Source: Selaginella moellendorffii (taxonomy: Eukaryota > Plantae > Lycopodiophyta). Taken from it: a stretch of 64,000 nt of DNA. Positions 13,860-47,737 of this stretch are shown here, one piece after another. The notes below the pieces were generated by a model. That model was not told where the DNA came from. It did not search any database and was given only the letters and a program-made list of their open reading frames with translations. Position 1 is the stretch's first letter. The number at the start of each line of letters is the position of its first letter. Made by a program: the position numbers and the translations under genes. The stretch spans positions 372,001-436,000 of the forward strand of contig NW_003314308.1 in NCBI RefSeq assembly GCF_000143415.4. The letters run 5' to 3'.

Positions 13860-14178
13860 ATTCCATATTCTATTTCCCGCATAAACCCTAGAAAGAAAAT
13901 TTTGGGGGGTGGGGCCATACCACTGCTGCTACTGGATTTGCCGCCATCGCTCTCCATGAGAATCGCGAGCGCGCGAGGTTTTCACTTTGGGCCGATGTTC
14001 CGCGGATGAGCAGGTCAGGAAGAGCATTTTGGAAGAAAAAATTTGTTTGATTGATACGAGTGAGAACAGGAGTGGAGATGCTCTTCATTACAAAGGTTTT
14101 TTCTTTTCTTCTTTCCTTCTTCTTGGTTTTCATTCTAACTTCTTACAGGTTATAGTAATGCGATGAGATTCCCAACAC
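13860..14178 (+). pseudogene. Deleted 5' fragment of AAR2
   Basis: Collinear with 24750-25256 but with many small deletions. A 3' AAR2 remnant (ttttactcatgctg..cagcctgttgac) reappears at ~15870-15910. Confidence 0.85.
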
Positions 14179-14329
14179 TCTTTGATGATTTACTCGACCA
14201 TCTTCCTCTCTGCTGCAGACACTGCTTTTGCTACGACAGATATGACTCCGTCGCTAGGCTCTAATATGAACGAACGTGGGAAAGATTAGAAAGATTTTAG
14301 GCTAATAGACTTACCATGCCGTTTAATCA

Positions 14330-15720
14330 ATGCCTTCTTCCCATCTTCGAAAGTGGTGAAGATCGTAAGGAGCTAGATTCTTATCAAACTTAAGGTTTCT
14401 AACTGCATAAGCATATGATCAGAAAACAAAGAAGTTTTTATTAAAAGAGAAAAGATTCATTGATGTTGAGATGGCATCTATGAGTAAAAGGATGTAACCA
14501 TATGTGCAAACAAGTGGGCAGATAAGAGGAATCATCATATCATAGGGATTGTGGCATATAGTCAAGGACATGTAACTTTTTTGAAAGCTAACAATATTTC
14601 CTCAATAAAAAAAAACAGTTGAGAATACTTTGCATTGCTAAGTAGAAGGCATTAACATTGTGGGTGCAGAGAATGTTGTCATGGTTGTAATAAATGGGGA
14701 AAATGCAAACAAAGTAACAAAAACAATTCTGAAATAGAGGTACTCATTTCCATGGATAGTAATGCTTCTGGAGTGAAGAAAGGCTTTGGTGAGCTTCATT
14801 AGAAACCACTCTCATATGGTGGTGTTGCTAATGGAATTTACTCATAAACGAATGTTGTGCTATAGTGATATAAAGTTTGGTTAACTTTATTATGATAGAG
14901 AGGATAGTGGAGCTTCGAGAAGCTCTATAACAAATGTTCATATACTCTATGTATAGAGCAAGGCCTATGAAGGCAAGAGTTGGCAGAGACAATTATGTAA
15001 CTATATTTGATGACCATTTTCAAGAACAAGCTAAGGACATATTAGAGGTACTTGAGGATGCTATACTACTACTTCGTCTTGTGGACGATGATATACTTAC
15101 AATTGGAAAAATATATAAGTGTATAAATAAGTTGAATGGAAGTTTAGAGGAACAATAATCAGATTATGGTAGATATAGAGAACTTCATCAAATTATGTTT
15201 AATTGGTGGCATGAGTATCACTTGCTCATGCACTTGGTGAGATATATACTAGACCCTAAGTTTAAGACCATGAAAAACATGCTAACAGAAAAGTTATGAA
15301 GGATTGGAATGCTTATTTATTAGCCATATTTACATCTAGTGAGAAGGATGTAATATAGGATGAGATTTTAACTTACAAGAGGATAGGAAACATTTTCAAC
15401 TCAATTGATGCTAAGGCTAATCACACTAAGAGGGGAGTTGTATGTTGGTGGAAGAATTATGGTTATGAAATTCCAGTGCTTTAGAAGCTAGCCATTCAAG
15501 TTCTAAATCAAGTATGCTCATCACCTTTGGTGGAGAGATTGTTTAACACTTTCAAGCATGTCTCTTCAAAAAAGAGGAATAACCATGATTATGACAAGTT
15601 TTTAAGCTACAAAGTACTAAAAACAATTCCTCATCTGGAAAACAAACTTGAGTCAGGAGAGGAAGAGGAAGATCGAGATGATGTTGAAGATAATGATGAT
15701 TTGTAGGATGTTTGAGTAGT
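14330..15720 (+). mobile_element. Degenerate hAT transposase (DUF659 plus C-terminal dimerisation domain)
   Basis: Remnants TICANKWADKR, GAENVVMVV and WWKNYGYEIPVL*KLAIQVLNQVCSSPLVERLFNTFKHVSSKKRN. Many stops, CpG-poor, and located between the two AAR2 remnants. Confidence 0.85.
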
Positions 15721-17549
15721 TTATATATAATAAAAAGTAGCATTCCTAGAATTAAAAATAGATATTCTTAGAATATTCACTAGAATATTAGTGAGCCATC
15801 ATGAGCAGTGATCATAGGTTCTAAAGCTCATGTTCATGTTCCATGTTAGTGTTTGTAACTATGCATAGGTGATTTTACTCATGCTGCAGCCTGTTGACAG
15901 AGAGATCCTTAAGCACCCCCTCTGCGCCCTTCTGGGAGCAGGGGGCAAATCAACAAAAAGGTGTTTTTTATTATTTTTTAAAAATTACTCCAAATATTAG
16001 AAAGCTAAAAGAAACTGCCATACTTTGCCAACTTTGTTTTAAAGCCAACTTGTTCCCATGCACGTATTTGGAGCTCTTCTACCCACCACGAAAGTCTTCG
16101 TTCTAGCATGTATGGGTAGAGCTTTGAAAAGCTCCTACTCACCATTATACTGTGGTTGGTTGGGAGCATGGGATCGCTAGTTTTGTGGACTGGAACTATG
16201 CTCAAGATCATTTAGCAAATTCTAATTCCTGCTTCTTTGCTTGCGCCATGGGCCAGAGATGAAAGAAGGGCTGCATGAATACTTTGTGCCAAACATTCCC
16301 ATACTCATGCCACTCTTGCGCAAACACCACAACATCTAGACATAGTCGATATAAGTCACAACTCAGTTGAAGAGCTGTTAATGGTTTACTGGTATTCATA
16401 AATCTCACCTTTCTCAATGCCATTTTTAACATCCTCTATCTTCTTTCCAAACTTCTTGTTTCTGGTGCTGCTGTAATTTCCTGGTTTATGATAGGTCCTT
16501 AGTCCTGGCTTCCTCCTCTAATGGCTCTGGATACCTTAAACTAAGCTCCCACCTTGCGAAAGCTTGTAAAACTTAACTTGTTTTGCCAGGAATTCTCGTA
16601 TATGGGTAGGAGGGGTTGCTCTTCCAGTGTACTCCGACTTCCATGTGAAGCCATTGTGAGTGCATGAAGTACTGTCTCAAGTGGAACACAGTAACTTGTG
16701 TGACATTAGACACTTTAGAAGCCTTTGTCCCTAATCGGTAGTTCACCTCTAGAACGAAATCTTGCTTGTCCTCTTTGAGGTTGGTCTGTTATTTTCTAAG
16801 GAATTTGTACAGGGTTGGTCTCGTTTTTTGAAGATAATTTACCAGGTAACTAGTGGTCTTGGTCTCCAGAATTTTCAGTTGGAGCCTAGTTGCAAAGGCA
16901 GCCGGAGTAGATCCTATGGATTCCAAGAAACTATGAAAGGCCTGCAAGATAGTAACAGAATTGTGGGATTACTTTCTTACCTGTGGTACATCATCAATCT
17001 CATTGTCACTGCTGGAAGTAGTGTCCAAATCGACGCCCGTGAGGGACAACGTACTACGTCCCTCATCTTCATTCAAATTGACGATATAACAATTTCATAG
17101 AGGTTACAAAATGGAACTTTCAAATATTACATAGTAATGACTTCGGATGAATTCCAGGGAAGGCAATTAGCAACTCAAAAAGAAACGGGTGGACCAAACG
17201 TGATAGATTCAGTCAAAGCGGTACTTAGAATGAACATGAGAGTAGGTATGTACTCTCAAGTACGTAGGTACGTACCAGCGCAGGTACGTATTTGCGCGTA
17301 AGTACAAAAGTTCTAATAGATTGATGGTGGTGTCCAAATCTGGCCAGATCTGGAGGATGGTAGAATAGTCAAGAGCCATAGATCAACCTCTTTCATGTTT
17401 TTCTTCTTTACATGTTCGCCAAAACCTTTTCATTCCAGCAAGTTGAGAAATGGAATACGATGTGACTGAGATGGTGATGGATCGAGAATTTGGAGGCTTC
17501 TGGCAGCCGAGGTAGAGCTCCATTCCTGAGAGTTATGACACTTCCCAAC

Positions 17550-18590
17550 TTAAGTGCGAACGTGGATTTCCACACAAGGGTCACCAAGCTGTTGCTGCTG
17601 CCGTCGCCGCAAGATGTTCATCGCTCGAGCCATTATGTAACAAGGCAGAAGAAATCCTGCGGCGCCGAGAAAGAAGAGCTGGACAAAATCAAAGTCTCAA
17701 CAAACCAGGAGACATCTATCCGAGTTTAAACGCTACCGTAAAGAAAGTGGAGGCGTCGCCGTCGCTCCCGGCGGCACCAAGAGCCAGCGTGAGACGAAGT
17801 AGCAGCAGTGCCATCAACTGAGACCCGAGGTAAAAGCTCTTGTCATTCGGAAAAAAACACAAGAACTAATGCGAGTGTACTTACGATGACTGCAGTAGAA
17901 CGGCAACAGGCAGCTCCGGAAGCATTTGCAGCCGCGTAGTCATCGATTTCCTGGATGAAGTTACGCTCGGCAGCCATTGCCATGATTCGAGGATCAAGCT
18001 GATGGTGGCTTCTCCATTCGACGTTCCTGCCAAGAAACAAAACGATGGAAGGTACTTTAGCACCTTCGCTTCACAGAAGATCGCTGACTGACGCTACATA
18101 CCTGGAGTGGTCATCGGGGAGAGCAACAGGAGCGGCAGGACGGACTGGCTCTGTGCAGCCTTTAAAAGGCTGCAAAACAGGACACCGAGAAAAAGAAAAG
18201 AAAACGTGATCGGAATCAGCGAACACGAGCAAGGTAAATCATAAGTTCAGTGCGGATGATGCTACCTGCTGACAAATCTCGCAGATGGTGTCCCCTTTTT
18301 CGTTGCACCAGCACTGCACGCACTTTCGATGAGCATACTGCCAAAACCAGAAACTTGCTTAGAACTCTCAGCCGGCACGAAGAACATACTTTCAAGCTGC
18401 CGCAGCAAGAGCACGGGATTTCGAGATTCCCAGCCTCGTCTTCCTCTAGGCAGATTCTACATTCGTCCTGCTGGGATTTTAGCGATGGTGGCGATGGTGA
18501 GTGATCCTGGTGATGGTGCTGCTGCTGCCGCTGATCAATTGGGAAGATGGAAAAACTGGTTTTTGATGAGCAGCGACAAGCTGGTTCCAT
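17550..18590 (-). CDS. RING-CH (MARCH-type)/DUF3675 E3 ligase, duplicate with altered termini (possible pseudogene)
   Basis: Exons CRICLEEDEAGNLEIPCSCCGSLK / YAHRKCVQCWCNEKGDTICEICQQ / ..AACCRSTAVI / LMALLLLR. The ancestral ATG at 18657 now meets TAA at 18607. The last splice donor has changed GT to CT. Confidence 0.6.
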
Positions 18591-18979
18591 TCTTCTGGAA
18601 GTGGGATTAGCGCAAACAAGCGCCGAGCCTCTCGACGTCTAGAGCGTGATCTTCCATATAAGCCGTGTGTGGAGCGAAGATCACAAAAAGGAAGAGGAGA
18701 AAAAAAATGGAGGAAGAAGATGTTTTCCAAAACGGTAAAACTCGTTTTAGTGTCAACATTTCTAGCCGAGAACTGGGAGTGAACGAGTGAAGCATGCACG
18801 AGACATTCCGCTGCTGCAGCGAACAAAGAGAAGGAAAAAGGAGAGAAGAAAAATCACCAGCACAAGAAGAAATCCTTCTTCAAACGATCATCAGGCCATG
18901 GCAGCTTTTATAGGTCAGAAAAGAAAAGAACCTCTGAACGTTGAGTCCCAAAATCCTCAAATATATAGCAAAACTGCGA

Positions 18980-24809: not shown

Positions 24810-26658
24810 ATGGAGGAAAGCGCGCCATACAGCGTCCGACTGGAGGCGGACAAGGCGCTGCACTTGGTGAAGCAGGGATCGTCGCTGCTGCTACTGGATT
24901 TGCCGCCATCGCTCTCCTTCGGGATCGATTTGCAGGTGAGAATCGCGAGCGCGCGAGGTCTAGGGTTTATGGGAATGCCTCTCTTTGTTGCAGATGTTTG
25001 TGGTCGGGACGATGTTCCGCGGCGTGAAAATGGTGCCTCCGGGGCCGCATTTCATCTACTACTCCGTGATGAGCAGGTGTGCAAGAGATTTTTGGAAGAA
25101 AAAATTTGTTTGGTTGATACGACTGAGAACAGGAGTGGAGATGCCGCTCCAGTGACTGGTTTCTTCATTACGGGAACGCAATCGAAGGTTTTTTCTTCTT
25201 CTTGGTTTTCATTCTTACTTCTTACAGGTTATAGTAATGCGATGGGATTCCCAACAGGAAATCTTTGTGAAGCTTACAGATCCGGCAGAGGTATCTTGTT
25301 ATAAAGGATAATGAAGTTCATTTTTCTGGTATTCAAAGTTTTCTGATGATGATGCAGGAGGAGAGATATGCTTATGCAGTTCGAAACCTCGAGTTTGATA
25401 AGAATCTAGCTCCTTACGATCTTCACCACTTTCGACGCTGGGAAGAACTTAGCAACTACGTCACTCCGGCCGTGATTAAACGGCATGGTAAGTCTAATGC
25501 CTTTTGGTTTTTAATCACTCGCGCTTTTGTTGATATTAGAGCCTCGCGACGGAGTCATATCTGTCGTAGCAGAAGCAGAACTTGTCGAGCAACATCCTCA
25601 GACCGCAGCAGAGAGGATGATGGTCGAGCAAATCATCAAAGGAAAAGAGACTTACGGCTTTAGAAACAAAGAAGGCGGTGAAGGGTCCACTCAAGACAGG
25701 AGTCGCTGTCGCTACACTCGTTTACCTAGACTTCTAAAGCGTTCTGGTGCAGAGGCCAAAGATTTGACTTCGTTAAACCTGGACAAGGTGAGCGTGCGTG
25801 ATGTCTTTGCCGTATGTTTACTGTGCTTTGTACAGTCCATAGCTCTTGAGAAGGCTCTGAAAGAATCTTACGATGGAAGCGAGGAGCTTCTACTAGGAGA
25901 GCTTCAGTTCGCTTATATAGCCTTTTTGGTAAATCTTCTCCTCCACCAATCTGTTATAACACTCGGTCTTTGCCAGATGGGACAATCTCTTGAAGGATTT
26001 AGTCAGTGGAAATCCATCGTGAGTCTTATGTTCGGCTGTCAGGAGGCAGTAAGTTTTTAGAGTATTCAGAAGATTTTTTTAGATTATCACTTCGTAGACT
26101 TACCGGACGTTGATTTTGCAGCCACTAAGGACTCGGACACGGCTTTTTGTCAAGGTAAATGCACTCTAGCACCTCTGACTAAGTCACGGCTATGCCGGTC
26201 TAGTTTCTGGAAGTGCTGTATCATCAAATGAGGCAGGGACTCAAGAACAACAAGTCAGACGTTGCTCTCGACGATTCCTCGTGGTTCTCAGCCGACAATT
26301 TCTTCCGGTTGCTCTCGAAGGTAACTACGTCTTTACATGTGTCACGTTTTCTCACCTATATCTCGTAGGACTTTTTACTCATGCTGAAGACCACTCAGCC
26401 TGTTGACGGAGAGCTCCTCATGCAGGTACGCTCGTACCATTTCGTGATTGTTTGTCGTTGAAGATTTAGATCCACTTGTAGGCAAGGAGGCTCAAACACT
26501 TGCTCGAGAGCCGTCTGGGGTGGGACCTTGACAACGAAATTAGCGATGCAAATGTAGATGATGACGAGGTATGTGTAATGTTTTGCTTTGTTTATCACAA
26601 TCCTTATACTTCTCTGTGAATGCCACAGTACGCTCCCGTAGTCGTAATGGACGTCTAG
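24810..26658 (+). CDS. AAR2: AAR2 (U5 snRNP assembly factor), multi-exon
   Basis: SLLLLDLPPSLSFGIDLQ, FRGVKMVPPGPHFIYYS, NLEFDKNLAPY, LLGELQFAYIAFL/MGQSLEGFSQWKSIV and terminal DDDE/YAPVVV. Confidence 0.92.
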
Positions 26659-26834
26659 AAAAAGCTTCTATTGCTTTCGAGTGCTTGTTAATTGAATGCG
26701 TTGGCAAAACCATTTCAAGCGTACTTGTGGGAAGGTTTGCAATTGGGAATTTACAATTTGTTTGCTTTGCGTTGATGACAACCAGTTTCGTCTCTTTTAT
26801 TTGTTTCTTCTTCACGTATTCGCCAAAAAACTCT

Positions 26835-28247
26835 TCATCCCCGCGCAGACGCAAGCAAGTTGAGAAATGGAATGCGCTGGGACTGAGATGGCGACGGATC
26901 GAGAATTTGGAGGCTTCTCGCAGCCGAGGTAGTGCTCCATTCCTGAGAGTCATGACACACCACTTAAGAACTTAACTGCGAACGTAGATTTCCACACAAG
27001 GGTCACCAACCTGTCGCTGCCGCCGTCGCTGCAAGATGTTCATCGCTCGAGCCATAATGTAACAAGGCAGAAGAAATCCTGCGGCCCTGAGGAAGAAAAG
27101 CTGGACAAAACCAAAGTCTCAACAAACAAGGAAAAATCTATCCGAGTTTCAACGCTACCGTAAAGAAAGTGGAGGCGTCGTCGTCGCTCCCGGCGGCACC
27201 AAGAGCCAGCGTGTGACGAAGTAGCAGCAGTGCCATCAACTGAGACCCGAGGTAAAAGCTCTTGTCATTCGGAAAAAAAAAAAAAAAAAAAAAAAAACAA
27301 CCGCAAGAACTCGAACTTACGATGAGTGCAGCAGAACGGCAACACGCAGCTCCGGAAGCATTGGCAGCCGCGTAGTCATCGATCTCCTGGATGAAGTGAC
27401 GCTCGGCAGCCATTGCCATGATTCGAGGATCAAGCTGGTGGTGGCTTCTCCACTCGACGTTCCTGCCAAGAAACAAAACGATGGAAGGTACTTTAGCACC
27501 TTTCGCCTCACAGAAGATCGCTCAATCAAAAAGAAGCACTACCGAAAAGCTCTATAAACTAAACGACGAGGAATCGAGCGAGCACGACAAGGAAAAGAAG
27601 AGTACACATACCTCGAGTGGTCATCGGGGAGAGCAACAGGAGCGGCAGGAGACCGGACTGGCGCTGTGTAGCCTTTAAAAGGCTGCAAAACAGAGGCGAG
27701 GCATCAGACAACCGAAGGGAAAGAAAAAAAAGAAAGAAAACAAAACAAAAGGAATGGTCGAAATCAGCGAACACGAGGAAGGTAAGCAAATCGTAAGTTC
27801 AGTGCGGATGATGTAACCTGCTGACAAATCTCGCAGATGGTGTCCCCTTTTTCGTTGCACCAGCGCTGCACGCACTTTCGATGAGCATACTGCCAAAACA
27901 CAAGGAAAGAGAAAAAAAAAAACGGGGAAGAGCCAGCAACTTGCTTAGAACTCTCAGCCGGCACGAAGAACAAAGTTCCTTACCTTCAAGCTGCCGCAAC
28001 AAGAGCACGGGATTTCGAGATTCCCAGCCTCGTCCTCCTCTTGGCAGATTCGACATTCGTCCTGCTGGGATTTTAGCGATGGTGGCGATGGTGGCTTTGC
28101 GGAGTGATCCTGGTGATGGTGATGCTGCTGAAGATGAAAAAACTGGTTTTGCATCAGCAGCGGCGAGCTGGTTCCATTCTTCTGGAAATGGGAGTCGCCC
28201 AAGCAAGCGCCGAGCCTCTCGATGTCTAGAGCGACATGATCTTCCAT
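26835..28247 (-). CDS. RING-CH (MARCH-type)/DUF3675 membrane E3 ligase, 7 exons
   Basis: CRICQEEDEAGNLEIPCSCCGSLK/YAHRKCVQRWCNEKGDTICEICQQ, then TM exons AACCRSAALI/LMALLLLRH and LRAAGFLLPCYIMAR. Confidence 0.9.
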
Positions 28248-28662
28248 ATAAGCCGTGTGTGGAGAGCGAAGAACACAAAAAGGAAGAGAGAAAAAAAAAA
28301 TGGAGGAAGAAGTCTACAAGAACTCCTGTTTTCCAAAACCCCTATTCTTCGTTTCTGTGTCAATCAATCAATCAAATCACTCAAAAGGGGTCACATTTTC
28401 TAGCCCAGAACTGCGAGTGAATGAGTAAAGCATGCACGAGATCATCCTCAAAGGGGAGAGGAAAAAGAAAGGGGATTCATTCCAAAGCTGCTGCTGCTGC
28501 TGCTGCTGCTGCCAACGGACAAAGAGAAGAAAAAAAAGAGCGAGAGAGGAAAAAAAAAACCCAAAGCAGCAGCAGCACAAGAAGCATCCCTTCTTCTCAG
28601 GGGATCATCGTCTTCTTCTTCGTCCTCCTCCTCTTTCGGTCATGGCAGCCTTTTTAGGTCAC

Positions 28663-28835: not shown

Positions 28836-29672
<837 letters not shown>

Positions 29673-29883
29673 GAAACACATTCTAATGTAATGAACCTTT
29701 TTGGCATATCATTCGAAATCAAAGATTCTACTACACATTTGATCCAAGCTTTCGAAAAGTATCAAGTTCTTGTTTCAGAGTTCTTTTTTGTTGATGTTTA
29801 GACTATTCAATGAAAGAAAAGAATCCAAAATCTACGATTGCAAAACTAGAAAGTAGTGCATTTTGTTCCATGGCATTCGAATT

Positions 29884-29980
29884 CGAGGCTTCAGACCGTC
29901 CTAACCATGTTCCACAGGAAAAAAAGATTTTTCGGAACAATGAATCGATCAGATTTGGTTTCTTGGCATCACTAGCCTCG
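29884..29980 (-). ncRNA. Box C/D snoRNA 3; predicted 18S guide for the U in AUACCGUCCUA (possibly snoR20-like)
   Basis: 7-bp terminal stem CGAGGCT/AGCCTCG, variant C box GTGATGC, D' CTGA and D CTGA. The D box is preceded by TAGGACGGT, complementary to plant 18S ACCGUCCUA. Confidence 0.65.
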
Positions 29981-30006
29981 CAAAGCAATCGCCCAAAACA
30001 GTGGAT

Positions 30007-30077
30007 GGCCTCAGAACGATGTTAACAGCACTAGAAATCAGACATATGCTTGTCAATGTGTTCGATCATCACAGGCC
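30007..30077 (-). ncRNA. U27: Box C/D snoRNA 2, U27/snR74 type (18S Am28)
   Basis: Terminal stem GGCC/GGCC, C box GTGATGA, guide GACAAGCATATG before D' CTGA pairing with 18S CAUAUGCUUGUC. The +5 rule gives A28. Terminal D CTGA. Confidence 0.9.
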
Positions 30078-30112
30078 TTTCCAGAGAGAAAGAAACGAGG
30101 AAGAACAAATCA

Positions 30113-30187
30113 GAGTCAGACTTTCAAAGCGAATCCTCAATCCAAATTCAGACAGGGATAACTGTGTCATTGAGAATCATCATCCTC
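30113..30187 (-). ncRNA. snoR38Y: Box C/D snoRNA 1, snR38/snoR38Y type (25S Gm2815 yeast equivalent)
   Basis: C box ATGATGA, guide CAGTTATCCCTGT before D' CTGA pairing with 25S ACAGGGAUAACUG (peptidyl transferase centre), C' TGAGGA and D CTGA. Confidence 0.9.
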
Positions 30188-30857
30188 GCTCCGCTAGCTA
30201 AGAAAAATCAACCTCGCCGCAGAGAGACTCACAACTTTAGGGTTCTTCGGCAGCCCTAAACGTTGCTTTACATGGAAATGGACGGCTACGATCGCATGAG
30301 CTAAATTTAAATCTCAGCGCCCGGTCCGCAAAATTTTGAATTTTAAAAAGCAGAAAACATTGCGACGTTTAGCCGGATTGGAATGCGAGCCCGCGTCCGG
30401 GTTTGAAATTTTTCAAAGGCTCCAAGGATCTGCCGCCACGTGGAGAATTACCGCCGGTGGTGTAAAAGAGGCCTTTGGTGGGAATCACCTGTTTGTAATT
30501 GGACGGTGGCGATCTGCGGACAGGGCGATTCCCGCCGTCGATCCTAGGGCTTGGCCAGATTAGGGCTCCCAAATTTCAAATCGATTTAAAAGAGGAGGAG
30601 GAGTACTGTAAGATCGGTAGGGTTTGCGGTCGCAGCGGGAGAAGCTGCTGCGCTCTAGTCGTCTAAGGCGCCGTGGATCCGCTGGGGAAGCGCAGCGCTG
30701 CCAATATGCGATTCGATTGGCGCTGATGAAGCAGTGGATTCTTCCCGTGGCGAGGTGAGCTGCTGGTTTTGCTGTGGAATTTGGCGACCAAATTCGTGGG
30801 ATTTCTAGGAACACCTATCTCTCCCTGAGTCTCCGGCTGGGTTAATTGGCTTGATTG

Positions 30858-47666: not shown

Positions 47667-47737
47667 GCGCAGCTGGTGTAGTGGTATCATAGTACCCTCC
47701 CACGGTACTGACCGGGGTTCGATTCCCCGGCTGCGCA
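47667..47737 (+). tRNA. tRNA-Gly (CCC)
   Basis: Acceptor stem GCGCAGC/GCTGCGC, anticodon arm GTACC-CTCCCAC-GGTAC, T arm with GGTTCGATTCC, upstream CAA and downstream TTTT terminator. Confidence 0.97.

Follow-up and report, generated by a model that had tools for sequence, protein, structure and literature searches.

Plant box C/D snoRNA genes are normally arranged in polycistronic, non-intronic clusters with telo-type motifs, and in Arabidopsis the precursors of non-intronic snoRNA clusters are capped, polyadenylated Pol II transcripts; upstream of non-intronic clusters a telo box is common (92% of them in Arabidopsis, 54% in rice) but not obligatory (PMC3022908). The closest described counterparts of the locus analysed here are rice clusters 27 and 30, both with the order snoR37-snoR37-snoR64-snoR38Y-snoR20 (PMC3022908, supplement 5), and the Arabidopsis cluster snoR88-snoR19-snoR136-snoR64-snoR20-snoR38Y, of which a second copy carries snoR19, snoR20 and snoR38Y (PMC2875012). 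U27 is grouped with snoR32 and U80 in both rice and Arabidopsis. The methylated sites assigned to these guides, 25S Gm2816 (snoR38Y), 18S Am28 (U27) and 18S Um1013 (snoR20.1), have been mapped by RiboMeth-seq in Arabidopsis (PMC8053127; PMC8583080), with no yeast or human equivalent listed for 18S Um1013 (PMC8583080). In a survey from 2016, the origin of U27 in plants was placed at the mesangiosperms, and snoR20 was scored as 0 in Selaginella moellendorffii, moss, pine and Amborella (PMC5122169).

We analysed a window of 64,000 nucleotides from the spikemoss S. moellendorffii (contig NW_003314308.1, positions 372,001 to 436,000), in which a cluster of three snoRNA genes occupies 29884-30192 on the minus strand, between RPS5 and an ALY/LIN9 gene. 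Taken as a whole, the locus is best explained as an independent polycistronic box C/D snoRNA locus with three guides, a reading to which we give a probability of roughly 90%. Its features, in window coordinates, are as follows.

28836..29672, plus strand: RPS5/uS7 coding region with four short introns (Pfam PF00177, spliced joints, gene call)
29884..29980, minus strand: unit 3, likely snoR20 orthologue (weak RF01193 best match, 18S guide, 7-bp stem)
30007..30077, minus strand: unit 2, putative U27/SNORD27/snR74 orthologue (Rfam RF00086, 18S guide, 4-bp stem)
30102..30192, minus strand: unit 1, putative snoR38Y/snR38 orthologue (Rfam RF00213, 25S guide, stems; ends set by an 8-bp G-U-rich stem)
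30236..30261, opposite orientations: two telomere-repeat permutations, 9 nt at 30244-30236 (minus) and 8 nt at 30254-30261 (plus)
30266..30595, no strand assigned: contig-free stretch of ~330 nt from cluster to ALY (zero depth, contig ends)
30596..34350 (3' end approximate), plus strand: ALWAYS EARLY / LIN9-type gene (DIRP domain, gene call, nine spliced joints)

The three genes are co-oriented, separated by spacers of 24-26 nt and located outside introns, in the interval from the stop of RPS5 to the start of ALY, with RPS5 convergent on the cluster and ALY divergent from it. The cluster is a non-intronic, co-oriented, short-spacer snoRNA gene array in the usual plant layout. As in rice clusters 27 and 30 and the Arabidopsis clusters, a non-intronic, here probably polycistronic, C/D arrangement contains snoR38Y and snoR20, but the spikemoss cluster differs from these in having three genes only, with U27 inside the pair and without snoR64, snoR37 and snoR19, and in a putative promoter gap of 330 nt held in common with ALY. 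The initial annotation had described three minus-strand units at this place, each possessing the boxes C, D' and D and a terminal stem, between RPS5 and ALY, and this was borne out, the neighbours being identified by Ribosomal_S7 and DIRP domains and by gene calls on an allelic scaffold. The Pfam search was run on single exon-bearing frames, and two such frames of ALY gave the DIRP domain.

That scaffold, GL377619.1 (GCA_000143415.2), aligns to window positions 24617-46759 at 98.0% with the same gene order, and there too the cluster is flanked by a Ribosomal_S7 gene and by the ALY copy, whose gene call carries DIRP and LIN9_C. A PPR gene located 4 kb away from the cluster is 97% identical to an S. 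moellendorffii protein encoded on GL377619.1, which we infer to be the second haplotype of the locus. Between the two, the 309 positions of the cluster include 3 that differ, none of them in a box or primary guide, while the 209 nt downstream of the cluster hold ~12 difference events. However, the promoter side (30193-30600) is as invariant as the cluster, with 2 differences in 408 positions, and the locus average is ~1.5%, so that the argument from polymorphism for the cluster is weak. Elsewhere in the window, ~14000-14420 and 17437-18720 are 80-90% similar to ~25050-28300, which holds the AAR2 and RINGv genes, and this resemblance suggests a local duplication.

Guide targets were evaluated against angiosperm rDNA as a proxy for that of the spikemoss, using plant rDNA contigs taken from bacterial assemblies; these were retrieved with a 28-nt plant 18S pattern, and full 18S, 5.8S and 25S were confirmed by Rfam. 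Plant rDNA contigs, evidently contamination, are present in at least 83 bacterial assemblies among the GTDB representatives, and one divergent eukaryotic SSU rRNA contains, at around its position 130, the motif that snR38 targets in 25S. On the angiosperm proxies, all three guides form at least nine consecutive pairs upstream of D or D', with a Watson-Crick pair at +5. At least 12 Watson-Crick pairs with rRNA were reached at 2 of the 327 CTGA sites on both strands of the window, both in the cluster and 110 nt apart, and when at least 9 bp was combined with a C-box-like motif no more than 90 nt upstream, the three cluster guides were the only CTGA sites left. The spare guide positions (first D of unit 1, D of unit 2 and D' of unit 3) never formed more than 6-8 pairs with rRNA and were taken as non-guiding with respect to rRNA targets.

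At gathering level, Rfam reported no snoRNA in the whole window, only a tRNA gene (47667-47737, plus strand, CCC anticodon (Gly), 60.5 bits). The best Rfam matches nonetheless agree with the guide targets for all three units; of the families against which the initial annotation had proposed a check, SNORD27 and snoR38 were recovered at E ~1e-5, whereas snoR20a reached an E of 0.7 and all three scores fell under gathering. Judged from their sequences, the three units are box C/D methylation-guide snoRNA genes of known types, with methylation itself predicted. The presence of one more RNA in the interval from unit 3 to RPS5 was also considered and is unlikely: there is no credible Rfam match, and the other haplotype has 12 nt deleted there.

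Unit 1 has a C box at 30183-30177, a D' box at 30151-30148 and a C'-like motif at 30140-30134, followed by two tandem CTGA motifs, six bases apart, as candidate D box (30119-30116 and 30113-30110, all on the minus strand). In K-turn register the first D box allows a terminal stem of 3 bp and the second a stem of 8 bp that includes four G-U, and we rate the stem as weak; the Rfam alignment uses the first D box, whereas the allelic scaffold turns the first G-U of the outer stem into G-C, which mildly favours the second. The D' guide (30164-30152, minus strand) forms 13 Watson-Crick pairs with 25S, and its +5 position falls on G2818 of angiosperm proxy L061, equal to Arabidopsis Gm2816 and to yeast Gm2815, the snR38 target originally proposed for this guide. 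With snoR38Y (RF00213; yeast snR38) it has in common an identical D' guide and box, a whole-model match and the same +5 target, and it departs from that family in a score under gathering (42.3 bits, E 1.5e-5, against 45), the tandem CTGA at the 3' end and the weak terminal stem. We assign unit 1 as a snoR38Y orthologue by guide and predicted target, though it is no formal Rfam member.

Use of the second D box (30113-30110), the one with the better terminal stem, could in principle make unit 1 a double guide that would also methylate 18S G638 (Arabidopsis numbering), a proposal we find barely credible. Against one of the angiosperm 18S variants the corresponding guide has a run of 11 paired nucleotides. 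Its positions 4 and 5, the latter being the target pair, are G-U, and both wobbles derive from the first CTGA itself. On the commonest plant 18S variant it forms only 8 pairs, its score is equalled by 5% of unrelated CTGA sites, and methylation of 18S G638 is absent from Arabidopsis maps. Counted from the U36 site (Arabidopsis A623, equal to human A668), the +5 position is 15 nt further on, and G638 would correspond to human Gm683, the SNORD19 target, if one assumes no indel between these two sites.

Unit 2 has its C box at 30072-30066, D' box at 30041-30038, a C'-like motif at ~30031-30025 and D box at 30014-30011 (minus strand), with a terminal stem of 4 bp in K-turn register. Its D' guide (30054-30043, minus strand) forms 12 bp with 18S and places +5 on A28, in keeping with the earlier designation of this guide as U27/snR74 directed at Am28. 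The unit matches the whole SNORD27 model (RF00086; yeast snR74) at 42.3 bits (E 4.9e-6), which is below the gathering score of 52, and has the D' guide and the 18S Am28 target in common with that family. By guide and predicted target we assign it as a U27 orthologue, under the Rfam gathering score. In angiosperms the U27 copies adjoin snoR32 and U80, whereas unit 2 is found with snoR38Y and snoR20. The spare D guide of unit 2 (30023-30015) and a loop of unit 3 (29942-29936) both complement 18S 1029-1035 (L061), over 7 nt, which is too short to call.

The initial annotation had suggested that this combination of genes may be lineage-specific. This held for U27, whose position between the other two is unmatched, but not for snoR38Y and snoR20, which are neighbours in rice and Arabidopsis, in rice in the same order as in the spikemoss and in Arabidopsis in the reverse order. 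The snoR38Y-snoR20 pair was probably inherited from the vascular-plant common ancestor, and U27 would then have either joined the group in the spikemoss or been dropped from it by flowering plants. An alternative is that snoR38Y and snoR20 were joined independently in spikemoss and flowering plants, the cluster being wholly lineage-specific; we consider this rather unlikely, as rice and Arabidopsis each retain the pair in two clusters and the rice order is the spikemoss order. Against shared ancestry, the linkage could be coincidental, with a chance of 5-10% on a rough estimate with ~108 C/D families. No moss, fern or second lycophyte cluster emerged when metagenome contigs were screened for a snoR38 guide followed by a U27 guide, or from other loci downstream of RPS5; the sole metagenome match to the guide order was an SSU rRNA gene read backwards, a false positive. 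Downstream of RPS5 in other plants (four loci, reached through the exon-4 frame) the DNA was AT-rich with no guides and no Rfam match, although these are not close relatives and carry little weight.

RNA contigs from four studies, which are unstranded and carry no mature-end information, are spliced at GT..AG across four RPS5 introns and nine ALY introns, which identifies them as RNA. Those over the cluster end at 30191, 30217, 30238 and 30265, three covering it fully and one as far as 30191; depth is zero at 30276-30543 in all four runs, and ALY contigs start at 30596-30634. A minus-strand precursor across the three units is likely and agrees with these contigs. The snoRNA genes could, though real, instead be covered by plus-strand read-through from RPS5, with the snoRNAs themselves made from another start or from separate promoters. 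The contigs being unstranded leaves room for this, as do the two runs in which they are continuous with RPS5, one from spliced RPS5 to 30191 (X12) and one from the last RPS5 exon to 30265 (X4). However, the other two runs, X13 and X5, list cluster contigs (29858-30238; 29777-30217) separately from the RPS5 pieces, and these pieces terminate at about 29731-29747; the contigs of all four runs stop just beyond the first unit, at the telomere-type motifs, and spacers of 24-26 nt are too short to hold separate promoters, so that we regard read-through as improbable.

Returning to the single minus-strand precursor, we infer that 30266-30595 is a divergent promoter common to the cluster and ALY, a gene of the DREAM complex. 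Telomere-type motifs are present at both ends of this gap, which also contains a TATA-like palindrome (30306-30311) and a G-box (30437-30442). A telo-box promoter had been proposed at ~30238-30260; telomere-type motifs are indeed present there, 52-78 nt upstream of the first C box, but they are permutations resembling a telo box and not the canonical AAACCCTA, which is found at RPS5 (28785, plus; 28821, minus) and at ALY but not at the cluster. No TGGGCY site II occurs within 30185-30720, and no TEF match was found upstream of the cluster.

Unit 3 has the weakest Rfam match of the three. Its C box (29972-29966) ends in C rather than A, its D' and D boxes lie at 29952-29949 and 29894-29891, the candidate C' (29916-29911) is degenerate (all minus strand), and in K-turn register the terminal stem is a perfect 7 bp. 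The D guide (29903-29895, minus strand) forms 9 bp plus one G-U with 18S, with +5 on U1012 of the proxy, equal to Arabidopsis Um1013; this target formed part of the rDNA search pattern and is hence present in all proxy loci by construction. The snoR20a model (RF01193) gives the best match, yet a weak one (19.3 bits, E 3.5 and 0.7, gathering 42). Unit 3 nevertheless has in common with RF01193 the guide and D box, which agree base for base with the consensus, the loop element at 29942-29936, the 18S Um1013 target and a similar length, while differing in its variant C box and in a score far under gathering. With the Rfam match weak, the snoR20 call rests on the guide, and unit 3 is likely snoR20-like, its common descent being less firmly supported than its guide role. 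The D' side (29965-29953, minus strand) shows a weak likeness to the Rfam snoU2_19 guide (E 1.5), with a haplotype SNP inside it (29959).

Three further stretches of unit 3 complement 18S near the target: 29954-29946 with 999-1007 (9 bp that take in the D' box and flanking bases), 29942-29936 with 1029-1035, and ~29909-29904 with 1019-1024, the last read off the sequence. The longest of these, the 9-bp helix beside the target, has p ~0.01 against shuffles preserving CTGA, whereas the energy of the complete duplex between unit 3 and 18S shows no significant gain over shuffles (p 0.08). In Arabidopsis, extra pairings are known for 45 of 104 sites and in over half of the cases adjoin the main helix. 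It is very improbable that units 1 and 2 are functional and unit 3 a decayed snoR20 copy or chance look-alike: the Rfam E of 0.7, the terminal C of the C box, a primary guide of 9 bp (a length of at least 9 bp being reached by 21 of the 327 CTGA sites in the window) and the existence of a snoR20 pseudogene in one rice cluster would fit, but are set against the perfect 7-bp stem, the consensus guide, D box and loop element, a +5 position on a mapped site, the 9-bp extra complement and a C box that keeps its K-turn-forming bases.

On the favoured reading, of three functional guides from one locus, minus-strand transcription by RNA polymerase II would begin at about 30265-30280, driven by a short promoter head-to-head with ALY, and produce a single precursor that, following plant precedent, would be cut in the 24-26-nt spacers and trimmed to the terminal stems, yielding three RNAs of ~70-95 nt. 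Each would assemble with the fibrillarin/NOP56/NOP58/L7Ae core, pair with pre-rRNA and direct 2'-O-methylation five bases from D or D', at 25S G2816, 18S A28 and 18S U1013 (Arabidopsis numbering), and in unit 3 the extra pairings beside the target may compensate for the short guide. The boxes, stems, complementarity and transcription across the locus are observed, and the steps joining them follow plant and yeast precedent, in part from PMC3022908; the target claims derive from pairing on proxy rDNA, for sites whose methylation is known from Arabidopsis.

Overall, this is a modest evolutionary data point, with known guide types in an ordinary plant layout and no new mechanism. It adds three snoRNA genes in a lycophyte that gathering-level Rfam annotation misses, and corrects the published record in which snoR20 was scored 0 in S. 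moellendorffii and plant U27 was dated to mesangiosperms; the locus argues that the absence of snoR20 and the recent origin of U27 in that survey (PMC5122169) are detection failures. If the linkage was inherited, the snoR38Y-snoR20 pair and the 18S Um1013 guide would predate the split between lycophytes and seed plants.
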